From the sequence record NC_047838.1: a stretch of DNA of 64,000 bases. One strand, given 5' to 3'. Positions 2,438 to 10,176 of the stretch are shown piece after piece. A program made the position numbers and the translations under genes. How positions within the stretch are numbered: the first letter of the stretch is position 1; every line of letters begins with the position of its first letter. Under the pieces are notes generated by a model that saw only the letters and a list, made by a program, of their open reading frames with translations, was not told where the DNA came from and did no database searches.

Positions 2438-2510
2438 GGGGTTATAGCTCAGTTGGTAGAGCGCCTGCTTTGCAAGCAGGATGTCAGCGGTTCGAGTCCG
2501 CTTAACTCCA
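2438..2510 (+). tRNA. tRNA-Ala(UGC)
   Basis: GGGGTTA/TAACTCC acceptor stem, CCTGC-TTTGCAA-GCAGG anticodon arm, TTCGAGT T-loop; CCA not encoded. Confidence 0.96.
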
Positions 2511-2516
2511 TAAATA
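2509..2516 (+). promoter_or_regulatory. T4-type late promoter candidate CATAAATA
   Basis: One mismatch to TATAAATA; overlaps the tRNA 3' end, 14 nt before the ATG at 2530. Confidence 0.55.
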
Positions 2517-2529
2517 TCTAAAAAGGGTA

Positions 2530-3828
2530 ATGGCGAAAAGTCTCCTTGATACAGATTTATATACTAAAACAGTCACGGTTATCAACGACAACCTTTATGA
2601 TCTGGGTATGTCAATTGATACTAAAAGAACTGAAGGATCATACATCTTTGTTATGTGTGATGAGGATAGACTCGAAACTCAAGAGTCTTTGGAGATGGAA
2701 ATTGAGAGAGTTTCTGGACTTCGTTGCAGCAGAAAATATGTCAAGTCAAAATCATCAACAGATTTAACGCAGGTTGAGGGGTTTGGAAAAAAATTAAATA
2801 TTGTTTTTAAAAACACCAGGGGTGGGATGCAGGAAACCACCCTCAATTCTACTATTACTGAATTGTTTCCAGCTATTGCTTTTGAAGCAGGTATTAGTAC
2901 AGATCTTGATCCGGCTATATTTTATAATAAACTTGTAGAGGCAAACGATCCAAAATTTGGTGCGTATAAAAATAAGAGTGCATATGATGCGGGCAAACCA
3001 TTTTTAGATAAAGCACCAACTTCCTCTAAATTTGAGGAGAAAACAACAAACGCTCAAGCAATTACAGAGTGGTTGATTGGTGAGAACAAAAGAAAAAAAA
3101 TTAAAAAAGTTGTCTGGGGATATCGCAATAATTTAAAACCAGATGGAGTTGCACCCAATCACAAGGGAGATATTTTTGCTGTTTTTGATGATGGTAATAT
3201 TTTAGGAATCTCCTTGAAGGCAGGTGGAGCAAAAACTGCTGAACCACAATTTAACAGTTACGTAAGACCTATCTTTACTTCTTTTGGAATGCTTAATGAC
3301 TATGCAAAACTTGAGAAACAATCTTACGAGACTTTCTACAAAGGTATCCCTGGGATTACGCCTGAGAATACTTATGGAAAGCAACAAATGACAAAAGTCA
3401 TAGGTGCCTTTGAAAAAAATAATTTAAAACAATATGAAATGCTATATGATGCACAACTTGAATTTGTGAGAGAGTATATTTGTGACATGATGAACAAATA
3501 TCCTGCCAAAGCAAAGAATTGGTTGTTGCGTGAAGTTGCAGCAGAACAAGAAGGTGTTCCCTTGATTGTTTTGAAAGCAGCAGGTAAGACAACTAAGATT
3601 GTTGACGACGAGAATGTAATTAAGGATTGTGTTCAGACATCTAAAAAAGCAAATGGAATAAAAGCATACCCTTCAAAAACATCAAAACAAAATTGGCATA
3701 TTGATTTAACGTGTAGAACTCATACTACAACCTTGAATTTTTCTATTAGAACAAACAAAACTGGGATCAGTCATAAATTGGGTCAGTATATCAATCTCGC
3801 AGTTAAGTTTAACGGAATCGCTAAATAA
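2530..3828 (+). CDS. hypothetical protein, possible PD-(D/E)XK nuclease fold
   Basis: KGDIFAVFDDGNILGISLKAG resembles the D..(S/E)xK active site of restriction-like nucleases; visibly AT-rich. Confidence 0.5.
   Translation: MAKSLLDTDLYTKTVTVINDNLYDLGMSIDTKRTEGSYIFVMCDEDRLETQESLEMEIERVSGLRCSRKYVKSKSSTDLTQVEGFGKKLNIVFKNTRGGMQETTLNSTITELFPAIAFEAGISTDLDPAIFYNKLVEANDPKFGAYKNKSAYDAGKPFLDKAPTSSKFEEKTTNAQAITEWLIGENKRKKIKKVVWGYRNNLKPDGVAPNHKGDIFAVFDDGNILGISLKAGGAKTAEPQFNSYVRPIFTSFGMLNDYAKLEKQSYETFYKGIPGITPENTYGKQQMTKVIGAFEKNNLKQYEMLYDAQLEFVREYICDMMNKYPAKAKNWLLREVAAEQEGVPLIVLKAAGKTTKIVDDENVIKDCVQTSKKANGIKAYPSKTSKQNWHIDLTCRTHTTTLNFSIRTNKTGISHKLGQYINLAVKFNGIAK
3821..3827 (+). promoter_or_regulatory. late promoter candidate CTAAATA
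   Basis: TAAATA core upstream of the ATG at 3851. Confidence 0.55.
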
Positions 3829-3850
3829 TGTATAAGGATTATCAATATAA

Positions 3851-5086
3851 ATGAAAAGTTTATTTCAGTTCCTAAATGAGGCGCAATCACAAGCGTCGAT
3901 GCAGGCGAAAAAACTGAATTTGAAAAGCGATGGCCATGGAGGTTGGTTAGACTCCAAGGGTAAATTTGTTGCGACTACAGAAGATGGTAAGTTAAAGTTT
4001 TTAGATAAGAAACAAGCAAAAGCACAAGATGAACCAAGTGCAAAACCAAAAGCAACTCAAGCAGAACCTGAAGCAAAGACTAAGAAACCTGCAACTCAAG
4101 AGACTGGCACGAAGAAAGCAGAAGCAGGTGATGGAGATCAAACTTCTGGGGAGACAACAGAAACCCTGACCGTTGCATTCGGTCGTTTTAATCCACCGAC
4201 TGTAGGACATGGTAAGTTACTTGCCGCGGCCAAGAAAGCGTCGGCAGGTGAAGACATGAAGATCTATCCTTCACGTTCACAGGATGCTAAGAAGAATCCT
4301 CTTGATCCTGACATGAAGGTTTCGTTTATGAAGAAAATGTTCCCTGATTATGCAGAGAACATTATTAATGATGATGAGATGAAGTCTATCTTCAACGTTC
4401 TCACCACGGCAGATGAGCAAGGGTATCGCAACGTCAACATCATCGTAGGTTCAGACCGTCAATCTGAGTTTGAAAATCTGGCAACCAAATATAATGGTGA
4501 CCTGTATAACTTTGAGAACATCCGTGTTATCTCTGCTGGTGTGAGAGATGCGGATGCTGAAGGTGTTGAGGGAATGTCAGCATCTAAGATGAGAAAGGCA
4601 GTCATGGATGATGACTTTAAAGCATTCCGTAGTGGCACACCAAAAGAATTGGATGATGGCGACACTCAGGCATTATTTGATGCAGTCCGTGCTGGCATGG
4701 GTATCAAGAAAAAGAAAGCAGAAGTTGCTGAGATGTGGCAGATTGCTCCCAAGTATGATCAAAGAGGTCTGCGCGAGCAGTATGTGAACGGACTAATCTA
4801 TCGTCTTGGTGATATTGTAGAAAGTCTGCATACAGGATTGGTTGGTACGATTATCCGCAGAGGAACTAATCACCTGATCTGTGTCACGAAAGAGGACTAT
4901 ATGTTTAAGTCCTGGATCCGTGATGTCATGGAATACACTGAGAAGAAAATGGAACGTCGTATGAGAGTTCCTGGAAAACCAAACACACTCGAAGGAACTG
5001 GTGGTTATACGAAGAATGCTATGGCAGCAACTGGCACATCTAGTATCAAGAATTTCATAAATAAGTATAAGATTAAAAAGTCATAG
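3851..5086 (+). CDS. cytidylyltransferase/NMNAT-like nucleotidyltransferase with N-terminal low-complexity region
   Basis: AFGRFNPPTVGHGKLL (T/HxGH), IIVGSDR, SASKMR motifs; N-terminus MKSLFQFLNEA. Confidence 0.8.
   Translation: MKSLFQFLNEAQSQASMQAKKLNLKSDGHGGWLDSKGKFVATTEDGKLKFLDKKQAKAQDEPSAKPKATQAEPEAKTKKPATQETGTKKAEAGDGDQTSGETTETLTVAFGRFNPPTVGHGKLLAAAKKASAGEDMKIYPSRSQDAKKNPLDPDMKVSFMKKMFPDYAENIINDDEMKSIFNVLTTADEQGYRNVNIIVGSDRQSEFENLATKYNGDLYNFENIRVISAGVRDADAEGVEGMSASKMRKAVMDDDFKAFRSGTPKELDDGDTQALFDAVRAGMGIKKKKAEVAEMWQIAPKYDQRGLREQYVNGLIYRLGDIVESLHTGLVGTIIRRGTNHLICVTKEDYMFKSWIRDVMEYTEKKMERRMRVPGKPNTLEGTGGYTKNAMAATGTSSIKNFINKYKIKKS
5056..5063 (+). promoter_or_regulatory. late promoter candidate CATAAATA
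   Basis: 30 nt upstream of the ATG at 5094. Confidence 0.55.
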
Positions 5087-5093
5087 AATTACC

Positions 5094-6698
5094 ATGTCTA
5101 ATGGAATCGGTAAAAATCCTTTAAACGATATTTCAAAGGTATACTTAGATCAAATCGTTGAGAAGAAGAAAGACGATACCTATCTTGAACCTGACATGAA
5201 GAAGCGTCAGGCAAATAATGAGAAGGCACGCAAAGAACTTGCCAAGGGTCCTCAAATGAAGAACCCCCATTTTGAATCTGCTGAGAAGAGTGGTTGGGAT
5301 GCTGTCAATTCCCTCGCAGATGTATATAAGAATATGAATGAAGAAGAAGTTGATGAAGCGATGAGTTCATATGATAGAAATCGTAAGAGAGCAGCACAGA
5401 GAGCAGCAGACAGAAATGCTGCCAGAGCAGCAGGTAAGACAGGTGTAGTTCCTGGAGTTGGATATGTGTCTCCTAGAAAGGAGAAAGAATCATATGTTGA
5501 TTCTGCAGGCACAACCAGACATAAGTCAGGCGCAAAGATGGAAGCACTTGATCCTGTCGGTAAGGAAGACGGTGATGTTAATAATGATGGTAAGAAAGAC
5601 AGCACCGATTCTTACCTGATGAAGCGCCGCAAGGCAATTGGTAATGCGATGAAAAAGAAACTCAAAGAGTCAAGATCACTCTCTGAGGTTATGACTGATG
5701 AGGTTGATGAAAAACCCATCAAAGAAAAGAACGTAAAGAATAAGATCAAAATTAGTCCTAAACTGGGTGAAGCAGTTGAGGACCTTGGTGGTGAACTGCT
5801 TGAAATGACTGAAGTTGATGAAGCAGTCTACGGTGGCACTCCTAAAGAGGAACCAAAAGACAAGCGCATGGTTGTCACTAATGCTGATAAGAAAGGAAAC
5901 ACACCTGCTTATCGTGCATTCAAAGCAGGTGACAAGCGTTACAAGGCTGCTGATCACATGAAAGAAGAGCAGGTTGATGAAGAGAAGAAACCTTTACCCA
6001 AGACAAAGATGTTCCGCAAAGCGGGCAACTTAGGACGTGATGCAATTAGCACTCCTATCGATCCTGAGAAACGTCAGAAGGCATACGATCGTTCTAAGAA
6101 GATTATCAAAACTTTGAACCAGAATGAGGATGTAAGCCTGGGAAAGTCACCAGAAACCTCAGAAATTCCTGAGGAGATGTCTCCACAGGAGATTCAACTT
6201 CAAAAGAAAAAAGCAACCATCGATAAGATGATTGCTCAAAGAAGAAAGACTGAACTTGCAAAAGGTAATGCTCCTACCAAAACCATGGGTGAAGGCAAGG
6301 GAGATCCTTGCTGGGACACTCACAAGCAAGTTGGTATGAAGAAGAAAGGAAACCGTATGGTTCCTAATTGTGTTCCCAAGAATGAGGAAGTAGAACTTGA
6401 TGAACGTACCCGTTTCGCAAAAGAAACAGGTAAAGATTTCAAGACTGGTAATCCATCTGAAAAGGGTGGCACCAGAACTGGCAAGTCTGCTTTTGATAAA
6501 GTAAGTCGCGATATGCGTAAGACTGGTGGTGTAATGTCCTCCAGAGGCAAAGGTATTCAACCTCAAGGTAAGAAGAAGGTCAAAGGTGCTAAGGGTTACA
6601 AAGGTGTAACTCCTGTAGATAAGATTAGGAACAGACTTGCTCAAAAGAGAGCAGCAAAACCTAACCCCTATAGAGCAAGAGCAGGTGAGTCCGACTGA
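5094..6698 (+). CDS. modular K/E-rich protein, probable head-internal protein
   Basis: Basic modules separated by acidic VDE/LKE/MGE/LDE sites; late promoter. Confidence 0.6.
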   Translation: MSNGIGKNPLNDISKVYLDQIVEKKKDDTYLEPDMKKRQANNEKARKELAKGPQMKNPHFESAEKSGWDAVNSLADVYKNMNEEEVDEAMSSYDRNRKRAAQRAADRNAARAAGKTGVVPGVGYVSPRKEKESYVDSAGTTRHKSGAKMEALDPVGKEDGDVNNDGKKDSTDSYLMKRRKAIGNAMKKKLKESRSLSEVMTDEVDEKPIKEKNVKNKIKISPKLGEAVEDLGGELLEMTEVDEAVYGGTPKEEPKDKRMVVTNADKKGNTPAYRAFKAGDKRYKAADHMKEEQVDEEKKPLPKTKMFRKAGNLGRDAISTPIDPEKRQKAYDRSKKIIKTLNQNEDVSLGKSPETSEIPEEMSPQEIQLQKKKATIDKMIAQRRKTELAKGNAPTKTMGEGKGDPCWDTHKQVGMKKKGNRMVPNCVPKNEEVELDERTRFAKETGKDFKTGNPSEKGGTRTGKSAFDKVSRDMRKTGGVMSSRGKGIQPQGKKKVKGAKGYKGVTPVDKIRNRLAQKRAAKPNPYRARAGESD

Positions 6699-7162
6699 TG
6701 CCTGCTCTCTCTAAAAAACAACAGCGATTCTTTGGAATCGTTCGTGCGATTCAAAAAGGAGAACAAGCACCTACCACTCCTGAAACTGCTAAGGCAGCAA
6801 GGGATATGAAGAAGGGTGATGTAAAAGATTTTGCATCAACCAAACATAAAGGTTTGCCTGAGAAAAAGGTCAAGAAAGAAGAGACTGATTACAAGTCAAG
6901 AGATAAAATTATGAAGAAAGCAAATCCTCTTCATAAACATCTTTACAAGAACCTTCATAAGAAGGATAAGACTGGTGATGTAAATGAAGAAAGTAAGTAT
7001 GATAGGTATGATACTGAAAAGAAAAAGTTTGCCAAGACCGACAAACGAATGAAGTTTGGTAAGTTCTATGACAAGGCAAAGGAGGCAAAGAATCGTCTTC
7101 GTCCTGGTGAAGTGAAACGTTACGACAAAAAACTTGGTAAGTACGTTTCTAATAAAGATTGA
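6698..7162 (+). CDS. DUF3008-like basic protein
   Basis: MPALSKKQQRFFG...DFASTKHKGLPEK pattern; TGATG coupling to the previous gene. Confidence 0.6.
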   Translation: MPALSKKQQRFFGIVRAIQKGEQAPTTPETAKAARDMKKGDVKDFASTKHKGLPEKKVKKEETDYKSRDKIMKKANPLHKHLYKNLHKKDKTGDVNEESKYDRYDTEKKKFAKTDKRMKFGKFYDKAKEAKNRLRPGEVKRYDKKLGKYVSNKD

Positions 7163-7192
7163 CGATATATATAATAGTTACTGAGGTTCATC

Positions 7193-7396
7193 ATGCTCGC
7201 ATTCCTTTTACCTTTAGCATCTAAGATTATTTCTGATGCAGTTGCCAAGATTCCAGAGAACGAGGAACTTGGAGAGAAGTTAGTTGAGATCTGCTTAGTC
7301 ATCTTAGGCAAGGCAGTTAAGCTTACAAAAACCGATATGGACGACCAATTATTGGAGGTCGTAACCAAAGCAATCGCTGCCCGTGAGGGTGAGTGA
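7193..7396 (+). CDS. hypothetical protein
   Basis: 67 aa helical ORF with GAGG RBS. Confidence 0.7.
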   Translation: MLAFLLPLASKIISDAVAKIPENEELGEKLVEICLVILGKAVKLTKTDMDDQLLEVVTKAIAAREGE

Positions 7397-7399
7397 TTT

Positions 7400-7407
7400 T
7401 ATAAATA
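7400..7407 (+). promoter_or_regulatory. T4 late promoter TATAAATA
   Basis: Exact consensus, 32 nt before the ATG at 7440. Confidence 0.8.
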
Positions 7408-7439
7408 TCTAATATCAAGTAAATTTTAGAGAGAAAGAC

Positions 7440-8243
7440 ATGGCACTCTGGGGAAATACCGATGCAATTAGTGTGAAGAGTGGTGGCACCGTTGCTATTA
7501 ATTATGCTACAGGGGCTGTAACTGGTGCTGGCACTAGTTTTGGTGTGAGTGGTTTTGCTGATGTTGGCGACATCCTGAGAGTTGGAACTCGTGTAGGAAC
7601 TGGTACATATTTTGGTGATGCTGTAATCGTTGCTGTTGCAAGCACAATTTCTTGCACCATCGGATCCACGATTGGTCTGCTTCATGCTGGTCCTAATGCA
7701 CACACTTCAACTGGTGCAACTACCTTCCAGGTAAGCAGACTTCCAAAATACACCACCACGCAGCCTCGCTTCAGTCAGGACACTGACTTTAATAAAGCGG
7801 ATGCTACCACAGCAACCGTAACAACTGCATCTGCAACTGGTGTAGCTGGTGTTGGAACAGATATTATTCCTGTTTCAGTATTAGGTGTTGTCAATACTAA
7901 TAGCGATACTCTCGTAAATGACAGCAACAACATTAAGATTTCCTCAGTTAATGCAACACAAGTAAGTCTTGCATCAACAATCTCTGCTGGAATCTCTACT
8001 GGAGACACCTTGACCTTCCAGAGAACTGCTGGTGGATATGAAGCAAATGTCTATGCTGTTGCTGAAGGTGGTAAGGAGTCTGCTGCTGGTGGACAGTACC
8101 AGGTTGACCATGCTGGTTGGGTTGGTGTTACCACATACGTTGACAACCATGGCAACCTGAGAGTCAAGAAAGAGACTCTCGTCGCGATGTCTGGTATTAC
8201 TACGGGCAACGTACCTCTCTATGATTCTGATCCCCTTGCATGA
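7440..8243 (+). CDS. probable virion structural protein (G/T/A/V-rich, beta-rich)
   Basis: MALWGNTD start, HAGWVGVTTY...KKETLVAMS end; exact late promoter. Confidence 0.6.
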   Translation: MALWGNTDAISVKSGGTVAINYATGAVTGAGTSFGVSGFADVGDILRVGTRVGTGTYFGDAVIVAVASTISCTIGSTIGLLHAGPNAHTSTGATTFQVSRLPKYTTTQPRFSQDTDFNKADATTATVTTASATGVAGVGTDIIPVSVLGVVNTNSDTLVNDSNNIKISSVNATQVSLASTISAGISTGDTLTFQRTAGGYEANVYAVAEGGKESAAGGQYQVDHAGWVGVTTYVDNHGNLRVKKETLVAMSGITTGNVPLYDSDPLA

Positions 8244-8250
8244 TGACTGA

Positions 8251-8643
8251 ATGATCTTTAATGAATTGAATGAGGATAACTTCCTCCTCTTCGCTATTAA
8301 AAATTATGAAAATCCTCAGGCAGTTACCAAAGAGGATTTTGATAAAGATCTAAATCACTTTAAGTATATCAAACGATTACTGAAGCGATATAAGAATACG
8401 GGTCAACTTAAGACTCATCTTCTTTTAAACCACTTTATCATTCTTTATAATATTTTTGGTGAAGCAACAACACCCATGTTGTTCTTTAAAATTGAAGAGG
8501 ATTTGTGGTCTTCCATGAAAAGTTTTATCATTTTTCTTGGAAGATTTCCTGAATATCCTCACTCATCGATTCATGATATCCAGGTCGATATGTTTTGTTT
8601 ATCGGAACTCTACAAGATCTATAATGAAAAAGAGTCCTCTTGA
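8251..8643 (+). CDS. conserved T4-like hypothetical protein
   Basis: FAIKNYENPQ...LLLNHFIILYNIFG pattern recalled from myoviruses upstream of primase. Confidence 0.7.
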   Translation: MIFNELNEDNFLLFAIKNYENPQAVTKEDFDKDLNHFKYIKRLLKRYKNTGQLKTHLLLNHFIILYNIFGEATTPMLFFKIEEDLWSSMKSFIIFLGRFPEYPHSSIHDIQVDMFCLSELYKIYNEKESS

Positions 8644-8836
8644 TAAGATTATTCAGATGATTCGTGAGGATGCTCCCACGAATGCGATGGCACATGGGAA
8701 GATTGCAGGGTCAGTAGAGGCTGGAGATGATCCTCCAGTAAGAAAGAAAAAGAAAAAGAATTATGCATATGGTGGTCACGGCAGCAGGAGAGTCTGGTTA
8801 GATTACTTCAGAAAGCAAAATGGCAGAGCAAATTAA
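8624..8836 (+). CDS. small basic hypothetical protein
   Basis: MKKSPLDKIIQMIREDAPTNA; start at ATG 8624. Confidence 0.6.
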   Translation: MKKSPLDKIIQMIREDAPTNAMAHGKIAGSVEAGDDPPVRKKKKKNYAYGGHGSRRVWLDYFRKQNGRAN

Positions 8837-9221
8837 ACTTGCGGTCCTAGAAGAGAAACTTCAAAACTTTGAGACATTAGTCTCTAGGTTGGACTCTGCT
8901 ATTGAAAAAATTGCTGAGGTAAATAATAACGTGAGTAGGATGCTTGCCGTTCATGAGGAAAGAATTACGAAGCAAGAGGAAATCGACGCGGTGTTGTTTG
9001 ATAAAATCGACAAACTCCGTGATAAAATGGACAGCGATCATGACATCGTTACTCAACGATTATCATTATTGGAACGGAAACTTTGGATTGGCATCGGAAT
9101 ACTGGGAGCAGTTGTAGCACTTACCAATCCTCAAGCAATCAAGACTCTCAGACCCTTGTTATCCTCTGCTGAAAGTGCTATAGTGGCACCAGCAGTTGCT
9201 TTTGTGGATGGATCATATTGA
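8820..9221 (+). CDS. coiled-coil protein with C-terminal TM segment
   Basis: Heptad pattern followed by LWIGIGILGAVVAL. Confidence 0.65.
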   Translation: MAEQIKLAVLEEKLQNFETLVSRLDSAIEKIAEVNNNVSRMLAVHEERITKQEEIDAVLFDKIDKLRDKMDSDHDIVTQRLSLLERKLWIGIGILGAVVALTNPQAIKTLRPLLSSAESAIVAPAVAFVDGSY

Positions 9222-10176
9222 CTCCAAGTTTATTGGACTCGTATCTTCACGGTTAGAAAAATTCAAGAGGGTAAAGGCGAATCTGTATAACTTTCGCTGC
9301 CCCATCTGTGGAGACTCTAAGAAGAACAAGAGTAAGACTAGAGGTTATTTGTATGCCGTGAAGGCAAACACTAACTTTAAGTGCCACAACTGTGGTGCTT
9401 CGATGTCACTTAACAACTTCTTGAAAGAAGTGGATCCTGTTATCCATAAGCAATATACTATGGAGAAGTTCAAGCAGGGACATACTGGTAGAAACTTTGT
9501 TACTGAAGAACCTGTCTTCAAGTTTGAGGCACCTAAATTTAAGAAGAAACTGAAACTTCCTAAGGCATCTGAGCATCCTAGATCTGCCGGATATCTAACG
9601 GCACGGAAACTCAATCCCGATGATTTCTACTATGCCAAACACTTTAAGAAGTTTGCCAACAGTCTCAAACCAACCTTTGATAGTGAGGAGCATGATGAAG
9701 AACGCATCATTATTCCTCTTTATTATGAAAAGAACTTAATTGGATTCCAGGGAAGATCCCTAGGTCCGAGCAAGGTTAAATACATTACCGTGATGCTTGA
9801 TGATGACGCACCAAAAATCTACGGATTGGATAACATCAGAAGAGATGCTCCAGTCTACGTTACAGAAGGACCTTTCGACAGCACGTTCATTTGCAACGCG
9901 ATTGCTATGTGCGGAGCTGACGCTGATGTTGGTCGTTGGGGGATTAGCAATCCTGTGTGGATCTATGATAACGAACCACGCAATAGAGAGATCACCAACC
10001 GTATCTCCAAAACAATTGATGCAGGTTACTCTGTAGTTATCTGGCCAAATGGCATAGATGATAAGGACATAAATGATATGGTGATGTCTGGACTGGACGT
10101 GCAGTCTGTGGTAGAATCAAACACTTATAGTGGATTAGAAGCAAAACTTAAATTCAACACTTGGAAGAAGATATGA
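9208..10176 (+). CDS. gp61: T4-like DNA primase
   Basis: Zn finger CPICGDS...CHNCG; TOPRIM VTEGPFDS and YDNEPRN. Confidence 0.96.
   Translation: MDHIDSKFIGLVSSRLEKFKRVKANLYNFRCPICGDSKKNKSKTRGYLYAVKANTNFKCHNCGASMSLNNFLKEVDPVIHKQYTMEKFKQGHTGRNFVTEEPVFKFEAPKFKKKLKLPKASEHPRSAGYLTARKLNPDDFYYAKHFKKFANSLKPTFDSEEHDEERIIIPLYYEKNLIGFQGRSLGPSKVKYITVMLDDDAPKIYGLDNIRRDAPVYVTEGPFDSTFICNAIAMCGADADVGRWGISNPVWIYDNEPRNREITNRISKTIDAGYSVVIWPNGIDDKDINDMVMSGLDVQSVVESNTYSGLEAKLKFNTWKKI

Follow-up and report, generated by a model that had tools for sequence, protein, structure and literature searches.

The stretch of DNA analysed here (the window, 64 kb) is the final 64,000 bases of the genome of Synechococcus phage Bellamy (NC_047838, Kyanoviridae), a T4-like cyanomyovirus, with which it is identical in sequence; a window position is the record position minus 140,930. 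This report concerns two adjacent genes, gene 171 (5094-6698) and gene 172 (6698-7162), both on the plus strand, which a first-pass annotation had proposed to encode polyproteins that are cut into peptides inside the phage head. The two open reading frames (ORFs) of 534 and 154 amino acids (aa) that it described are present with all of the Glu-ending motifs it listed, and they correspond to RefSeq genes 171 and 172, the second of which starts in an ATGA overlap with the first. They are flanked by gene 170 (3851-5086, plus strand), which encodes a cytidylyltransferase/NMNAT-like protein (PHROG 395 at 1.5e-102) and is the upstream anchor of what proves to be a variable slot, and by the conserved 67-aa gene 173. 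The block of genes 170-173 lies between mazG/gp41 and gp61/nrdA, in the replication module and not in the structural module. The gene 171 product consists of short modules strung together, has 16 hydrophobic-x-Glu sites, and is a candidate polyprotein substrate of the gp21-type protease. On balance, we lean toward the view that genes 171 and 172 are a cyanophage analogue of the T4 internal proteins, that is, shuffled polyproteins in which gp21 sites serve as punctuation between modules.

Both products are basic and poor in hydrophobic residues, with an isoelectric point (pI) of 9.6 and 22% Lys+Arg for gene 171 and a pI of 10.0 and 30% Lys+Arg for gene 172. Gene 171, whose modules are given here with their plus-strand window positions, opens with a leader (residues 1-23, 5094-5162) that ends in I-V-E and in which Tyr17 is at least 90% conserved. 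The leader is followed by a basic module with a pI of 9.6 (residues 24-61, 5163-5276), which recurs in S-RIM2 phages as a separate piece with 87% identity, by an acidic spacer that ends in an E-E-V-D-E linker (residues 62-88, 5277-5357), and by an Arg-rich basic module with a pI of 10.5 and a confident N-terminal helix (residues 89-150, 5358-5543). The best-conserved module (residues 151-192, 5544-5669) has nearly invariant columns and contains a single predicted Ca-binding loop-helix repeat of the dockerin/F-hand type. Next comes an invariant core that is predicted to be disordered, with a predicted local distance difference test score (pLDDT) below 50 (residues 193-243, 5670-5822). It carries a cluster of hydrophobic-x-Glu sites (E198, E206, E211, E226, E237, E240, and E243) that includes the top junction motifs; in the alignment columns E198, E211, and E226 are invariant, and E237 and E240 are nearly so. 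A small, confidently modelled hairpin-plus-helices module (residues 244-296, 5823-5981; pLDDT 75-93) ends in Q-V-D-E and leads into a basic helical module (residues 297-360, 5982-6173) that matches PHROG 764 and also terminates some proteins annotated as cytidylyltransferases. The remainder consists of a basic helix module ending in a conserved K-x-M-G-E junction (residues 361-400, 6174-6293), a two-Cys module ending in an E-E-V-E-L-D-E linker (residues 401-437, 6294-6404), and a very basic C-terminal module with a net charge of +20 and a pI of 11.1 (residues 438-534, 6405-6695), which is common to S-SCSM1 ORF92 and PHROG 11470. Gene 172 comprises a DUF3008-like module ending in G-D-V-N-E (residues 1-97) and a variable basic tail (residues 98-154), and has just one conserved Glu site.

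The motifs in gene 171 are QIVE23, EVDE88/A, KME150/A, LKE192/S, LGE226/A, EVDE243/A, QVDE296, MGE400/G, and ELDE437/R, and the motif in gene 172 is VNE97/E. Cuts at twelve conserved border sites of gene 171 would yield basic pieces with a length of 20-97 residues and a pI of 9-11.1, a two-Cys piece that is near neutral, and four acidic pieces (14-27 residues, pI 4.1-4.8). The modules had at first been described as uniformly basic, and this part of the description did not hold, as the predicted pieces alternate basic peptides (pI 9-11) with short acidic spacers (pI of about 4.1). An estimate of about 10 released peptides is plausible given the nine or so basic peptides and four acidic spacers from gene 171 and two pieces from gene 172, a count that depends on the sites chosen.

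An AlphaFold2 model of the gene 171 product, built on a 23-sequence alignment, has a predicted template modelling score (pTM) of 0.20 and a mean pLDDT of 57.9. Isolated helices and the one small hairpin module are locally confident, with low-confidence segments between them and no globular fold, and 11 of the 16 hydrophobic-x-Glu sites fall in segments with a pLDDT below 50. Pfam searches with the whole proteins and with single modules of genes 171 and 172 returned nothing beyond half of a dockerin repeat and a sub-threshold DUF3008 match, and an ESM Atlas search found only viral hypothetical look-alikes. When residues 151-207 were scanned alone (5544-5714), Dockerin_1 (PF00404) matched at 32.8 bits against a cut-off of 22.9, over only profile positions 2-23 of 57. 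Judged by this match, the best-conserved module is a predicted Ca-binding loop-helix and not a full dockerin. Its loop, D-x-N-x-D-G-x-x-D, is dockerin/EF-hand-like. Residues 3-57 of gene 172 align over the full profile length of DUF3008 (PF11450) at 19.7 bits, below the cut-off of 24, and match PHROG 30268 at 8.9e-22; on these alignments the first module of gene 172 is likely a distant DUF3008 relative.

Sites of the form [LIVM]-x-E occur 16 times in gene 171, whereas 7.8 +/- 2.4 are expected from composition-preserving shuffles (P of about 0.002). When Bellamy ORFs are ranked by the z-score of this excess, gene 171 is second among 220, the gp22 scaffold is third (25 versus 14.4), and gp21 is in the top fifteen. 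No excess is seen in the folded neighbour gene 170 (5 versus 5.4 in shuffles) or in gene 172 alone (2 versus 1.3). Known gp21 substrates of T4 show an approximately twofold excess, as does gene 171, with 21 sites versus 11.1 expected in gp22, 11 versus 4.2 in gp21, and 6 versus 2.8 in gp68.

The position of these sites relative to module borders was analysed with break-points that were set without reference to the motif, each being the end of an ungapped match beyond which two proteins diverge, in a collection of 65 related proteins. Among unique junction 8-mers, 82 of 518 ended exactly in [LIVM]-x-E. In a second count, 117 of the 794 break-points (14.7%) did so against a background of 2.7%, which is a 5.4-fold enrichment. 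The effect is specific to Glu, as hydrophobic-x-Asp (0.92-fold), hydrophobic-x-Gln (0.88-fold), and hydrophobic-x-Lys (1.5-fold) all stay well below this value, and at the last position before the break-point Glu stands at 3.1-fold and Asp at 0.71-fold. Enrichment of Glu but not of Asp fits the finding in T4 that Asp at P1 blocks processing (PMC9026906).

The same junctions also lead into many different modules. An acidic linker ending in V-D-E or L-D-E is followed by at least 12 unrelated downstream sequences, and both K-A-M-G-E and, in the small ORF, G-D-V-N-E are followed by at least 8. Furthermore, modules that are internal in one phage can open an ORF in another. A Trp-containing module that is ORF-initial after Met in one phage is directly preceded by Glu in 12 of the 14 contexts in which it is internal elsewhere, and the DUF3008 module lies directly after L-H-E inside S-PM2 p146 and is ORF-initial in another phage. 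Similarly, the first module of Bellamy gene 123, a basic modular protein encoded elsewhere in the genome, is found directly after G-D-V-N-E-E inside the small ORFs of other phages. In sea-water metatranscriptome contigs, three different upstream points join at 5541, which is the Glu150/Ala151 border. The conservation of Glu sites at module borders, whose absence the first-pass annotation had named as one of two findings that would refute its proposal, is thus borne out by the diversity downstream of the motifs, by the break-points, and by the coincidences with ORF starts.

These results bear on the main rival explanation, in which the proteins are head-internal or DNA-associated and lose a leader at most, being long, flexible, multi-module DNA-binding proteins that are uncut internally and whose acidic stretches are linkers or charge-balancing spacers. 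The isolated-helix AlphaFold2 model is expected of a disordered DNA-coating protein, the commonest linker is a longer acidic run and not a minimal three-residue site, and the detection of counterparts in virions, described below, is silent on size. A plain acidic linker, however, would be expected to place Asp at module ends in addition to Glu, contrary to the ratios given above. In addition, the non-acidic junctions K-A-M-G-E, K-L-G-E, and K-K-L-K-E retain the P1 Glu and the hydrophobic P3, and internal modules begin exactly where free-standing ORFs begin. We consider it rather unlikely that the proteins stay uncut; multi-site cleavage of gene 171, as predicted here, is indirectly supported by several independent lines of sequence evidence.

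The content of the slot between gene 170 and gene 173 varies widely among phages. In PHROG scans, gene 171 matched ten different families and gene 172 matched five, every match being confined to a short stretch; cytidylyltransferase is the label of some of these families because modules are fused to that enzyme elsewhere. Through the cytidylyltransferase we collected 80 related loci, 36 of which have a complete slot. In these 36 loci the distance from the enzyme to the 67-aa gene is 1,457-3,267 bp, and the slot contains a large ORF (292-794 aa), behind which there is mostly at least one small ORF (60-286 aa). When 32 large ORFs are aligned, proteins of about 500 residues spread over 1,834 columns, since modules come and go in blocks. 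Matches in 353 phage records likewise correspond to discrete pieces of gene 171, for example residues 24-62, 114-152, 152-186, and 299-343. The order of modules also changes, with the two-Cys module before the Ca-binding module in S-PM2 p145 and after it in Bellamy. A comparison of module order between phages had been suggested as a way to look for shuffling, and the slot loci, the 32-ORF alignment, and S-PM2 p145 together confirm it in both presence and order. The linker codons vary synonymously (34 distinct 9-mers at 89 sites), so that selection acts on the peptide and not on a DNA recombination signal. DNA microhomology as the sole explanation of the junctions was also considered and was judged unlikely, given this synonymous variation.

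The proposed processing calls for a cutting enzyme of the gp21 type, and Bellamy does encode one: the gene annotated as the head maturation protease (record 116507-116950) matches Peptidase_S77 (PF03420) at 119.3 bits. In Bellamy gp23, L-N-E57 aligns with the L-T-E site of T4 gp23, which we take to be the maturation cut after Glu65. In the T4 capsid-targeting leader, positions 4 and 7 serve targeting and positions 8 and 10 serve processing; with Asp at position 10, cutting is blocked (PMC9026906). Compared with the T4 ipII/ipIII leader sequence, read from NC_000866, the 23-residue gene 171 leader matches at three of the four key positions (Tyr, Ile, and Glu) and not at Phe. The first 10 codons of gene 170 (3851-3880) match in type at all four, and this leader is conserved in every relative, Syn9 and S-SM1 included. 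The RefSeq start of gene 170 is an ATG at 3899, and the ORF from 3851 adds 16 residues that include the leader; because the leader residues are conserved in all relatives, the RefSeq start is probably too late.

A late-promoter-like CATAAATA lies on the plus strand at 5056-5063, 31 nucleotides (nt) upstream of the gene 171 ATG and inside the 3' end of gene 170. A second copy (2510-2517, plus strand; record position 143439) precedes by 14 nt gene 169, with which the tightly packed run 169-172 begins. Genome-wide, the relaxed motif NATAAATA occurs 48 times, and 35 of these occurrences are within 80 nt upstream of a same-strand ORF; the ORFs behind it include those for the portal and scaffold, other large ORFs, and genes 169, 171, and 174. 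Among distinct loci, 26 of 27 have NATAAATA 24-34 nt upstream of the large slot ORF despite differences in the overlapping coding sequence. The relaxed map is the informative one, since exact TATAAATA is not over-represented in the window (3 versus 2.1 expected). The description of the two ORFs as late stands at the level of the motif only, through the conserved NATAAATA-type motif upstream of gene 171. Contigs from sea-water RNA libraries, which derive from relatives, span both genes and bridge the 170/171 and 171/172 borders, and are uninformative on timing, starts, or levels.

Positional counterparts of these proteins have been found in the virions of three other cyanomyoviruses. In purified S-SM1 virions, the cytidylyltransferase (T4-GC190) was detected with 25 peptide counts, the next two ORFs, SSM1_191 (1,422 bp) and SSM1_192 (489 bp), with 10 and 7 counts, and further genes of that run likewise (Sullivan 2010, PMC3037559). 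In the GenBank record of S-SCSM1, ORFs 90-93, 95, and 97 are labelled virion proteins (PMC9602691). S-SCSM1 ORF92 matches gene 171 at an E value of 1e-42 and shares its leader together with its Ca-binding and C-terminal modules, and ORF93, a stand-alone DUF3008-type protein of 69 aa, has 63% identity with the first module of gene 172. In the S-CREM2 virion, the cytidylyltransferase ORF154, the next two ORFs (ORF155 and ORF156), and ORF160 were detected (PMC10665884). Gene 170 orthologs are detected in the virions of all three phages. The head or virion location first proposed for these proteins is therefore supported through mass spectrometry of their counterparts, and virion association of this protein group is well supported. 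Because the counterparts are found in three related phages, genes 171 and 172 probably encode the cyanophage version of the T4 injected internal proteins. The sequence of S-CREM2 ORF156, a virion protein and the second slot ORF, suggests a folded protein, possibly of the nucleotidyltransferase type, and not a peptide string; from its appearance, the variable slot may carry enzymes as well.

The virion data also speak to a role in assembly. Like T4 gp22, gp67, and gp68, the proteins could be accessory prohead-core or scaffold components; they would be chopped by gp21, mostly expelled as the head matures, and serve assembly and not delivery into the host. The density of sites equals that of the gp22 scaffold, T4 gp68 too has a very basic tail, and the four acidic pieces resemble the fragments that leave T4 heads (PMC5694885). 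Counterparts, however, occur in mature virions purified on CsCl, at counts that resemble those of portal or neck proteins, and the slot content is hypervariable (1.5-3.3 kb across the 36 loci), unlike that expected of a conserved assembly factor. Bellamy moreover has its own gp22 and two small ORFs at the position of T4 genes 67/68, and we regard an assembly role as improbable. More improbable still is that the Glu-ending junctions are recombination microhomologies, or chance occurrences in Lys/Glu-rich disordered proteins, and that the proteins are cytoplasmic and co-purify with virions. At the DNA level the junctions are GA-rich, and illegitimate recombination could be promoted by short repeats; two of the proteomic studies themselves carry the authors' caution that abundant non-structural proteins might co-purify (PMC9602691, PMC10665884). 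This explanation sits poorly with the many synonymous linker variants, with the agreement of three independent virion proteomes over a run of neighbouring genes, and with the conservation of both the late-promoter motif and the T4-like leader.

If genes 171 and 172 do encode processed polyproteins, the products would be synthesized late from NATAAATA promoters, and the gene 171 product would be directed to the prohead core by its N-terminal leader, which resembles the T4 capsid-targeting sequence. The gp21 prohead protease would then cut after the Glu of hydrophobic-x-Glu at the module borders, releasing about nine basic peptides of 20-97 residues. The short acidic spacers freed by the same cuts would probably leave the head, while the basic peptides would remain with the DNA and enter the cell together with it. 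Retained in the head and injected in this way, the peptides may condense DNA or act against the host. Because every module ends in the same type of cut site, modules could be gained, lost, and reordered through recombination without loss of processing, which would explain the variability of the slot.

Several points weigh against this interpretation, in addition to the co-purification caveat. The virion detections concern counterparts in other cyanomyoviruses and not the proteins of Bellamy, and the published data list proteins without termini or masses, with no peptide lists in the S-SCSM1 and S-CREM2 supplements. Counterparts are unreported in the virion studies of Syn9 and S-PM2; small Lys-rich peptides would presumably be easily missed on gels and after trypsin. 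Upon inspection, the N termini of genes 172 and 123 both lack a T4-type capsid-targeting leader. Neither BLASTP against a five-protein database of T4 IPII, IPIII, gp22, gp67, and gp68 (best E value, 0.074) nor Pfam revealed any similarity to these proteins. The z-score for site enrichment in gene 171 is a modest 2.9, Val or Met occupies P3 of many junction sites, in contrast to the Leu or Ile of the T4 sites inspected here, and something other than proteolysis could account for the acidic linkers that separate basic modules. Lastly, the junction counts are drawn from related sequences and are not independent events, so that the nominal binomial P of 4e-49 overstates independence, and the contrast between Glu and Asp is the more robust point.

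The nearest known system is that of the T4 internal proteins IPI, IPII, and IPIII, which are small, basic, head-internal late proteins with an N-terminal leader that ends in hydrophobic-x-Glu and is removed by gp21, and whose hypervariable loci share little beyond this leader. They are injected with the DNA, and IPI* blocks a host restriction enzyme (PMC3012670, PMC9026906); within T4 heads, the basic internal proteins remain associated with the DNA (PMC3012670), and core fragments and propeptides leave (PMC5694885). Bellamy differs in several respects. In T4 each gene encodes one protein with one cut, whereas gene 171 has many modules in one ORF and up to about 12 candidate cuts. The gene 171 leader has 13 extra residues at its front, gene 172 has no leader, cleavage in Bellamy is predicted, and the BLASTP comparison gave no sequence homology between the T4 internal proteins and the products of genes 171 and 172. 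The T4 proteins gp22, gp67, and gp68 are likewise multi-site gp21 substrates with a roughly twofold excess of hydrophobic-x-Glu and are cut into short fragments (PMC5694885). Unlike genes 171 and 172, which are basic and hypervariable and whose counterparts remain in mature virions, they are largely acidic assembly proteins that are conserved in position and content and mostly expelled. The inner-body and ejection proteins of the giant phages phiKZ, 201phi2-1, and SPN3US are another parallel, in that many head-internal proteins are cut after Glu by a gp21-related protease, sometimes at multiple sites of a single protein, and are delivered into the host (PMC5694885). Those phages belong to another lineage, their motif is Ala/Ser/Gly-x-Glu, and their substrates are large folded proteins with propeptides and not strings of 20-100-residue modules. 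Adenovirus offers a more distant parallel, in that basic DNA-condensing peptides (pVII and pX/Mu) are freed inside the capsid by a viral protease. It is a eukaryotic virus, however, whose cysteine protease is unrelated, and there is no module shuffling.

Our literature search found no paper on capsid-targeting leaders, internal proteins, or polyproteins in cyanomyoviruses, and we know of no equivalents of the T4 injected internal proteins that have been named in T4-like cyanophages. The proteins as such already carry annotations, either as virion proteins or as hypothetical ones. T4-like cyanophages rank with the most abundant viruses of the sea, and how their infection proceeds in its first minutes is poorly understood. 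Protease-released peptide sets, if real, would explain a hypervariable and so far unannotated block of virion proteins in most cyanomyoviruses and would provide candidate injected peptides by the dozen for tests against the defences of cyanobacteria. Cut sites that double as recombination-tolerant module borders would also represent a simple evolutionary design principle. A broader and more tentative idea, which we hold to be less likely than not, is that cyanomyoviruses possess plug-and-play polyprotein cassettes with the gp21 cut site as a universal punctuation mark, whereby any small module placed between two sites would be packaged, released in the head, and delivered with the DNA. Recombination at the 171/172 and 123 slots might in that case generate combinations of injected anti-defence or host-takeover peptides, an arrangement undescribed in any phage.

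The neighbouring genes extend this picture beyond the slot. Genes 169-177 (2530-10176) are embedded in the DNA-replication module, with mazG/gp41 on one side and gp61 on the other, and have NATAAATA motifs of their own. The region looks like a virion-protein island, as the relatives' counterparts of genes 170-172 and 174 are virion proteins where proteomics exists; for gene 169, similarity to the counterpart regions was undetectable in seven comparison loci. Gene 174 (7440-8243, plus strand) has a canonical TATAAATA late-promoter motif at 7400-7407 on the same strand, 33 nt upstream, and is the counterpart of the virion protein S-SCSM1 ORF95. S-SM1 SSM1_195 (T4-GC425), which was detected in virions, is its counterpart by position only. 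Gene 176 (8624-8836) is a basic ORF of 70 aa that does begin with M-I-R-E/D, as had been noted for the ORF at 8624, and its counterpart, again by position only, is S-SCSM1 ORF97 (61 aa), an annotated virion protein.

The products of gene 170 and of gene 123 are probably of the same kind as those of genes 171 and 172. Gene 123 (record 107172-109028) lies outside the window, between the large-terminase gene and the tail-fibre gene that follows the small-terminase gene. It encodes a second basic modular protein (618 aa, pI 9.6) with acidic linkers of the E-E-V-E-L-x-D-E type, as in genes 171 and 172, and has modules in common with these two genes, with the slot ORFs of other phages, and with the virion protein S-CREM2 ORF160, together with DUF192 and DUF6321 domains.

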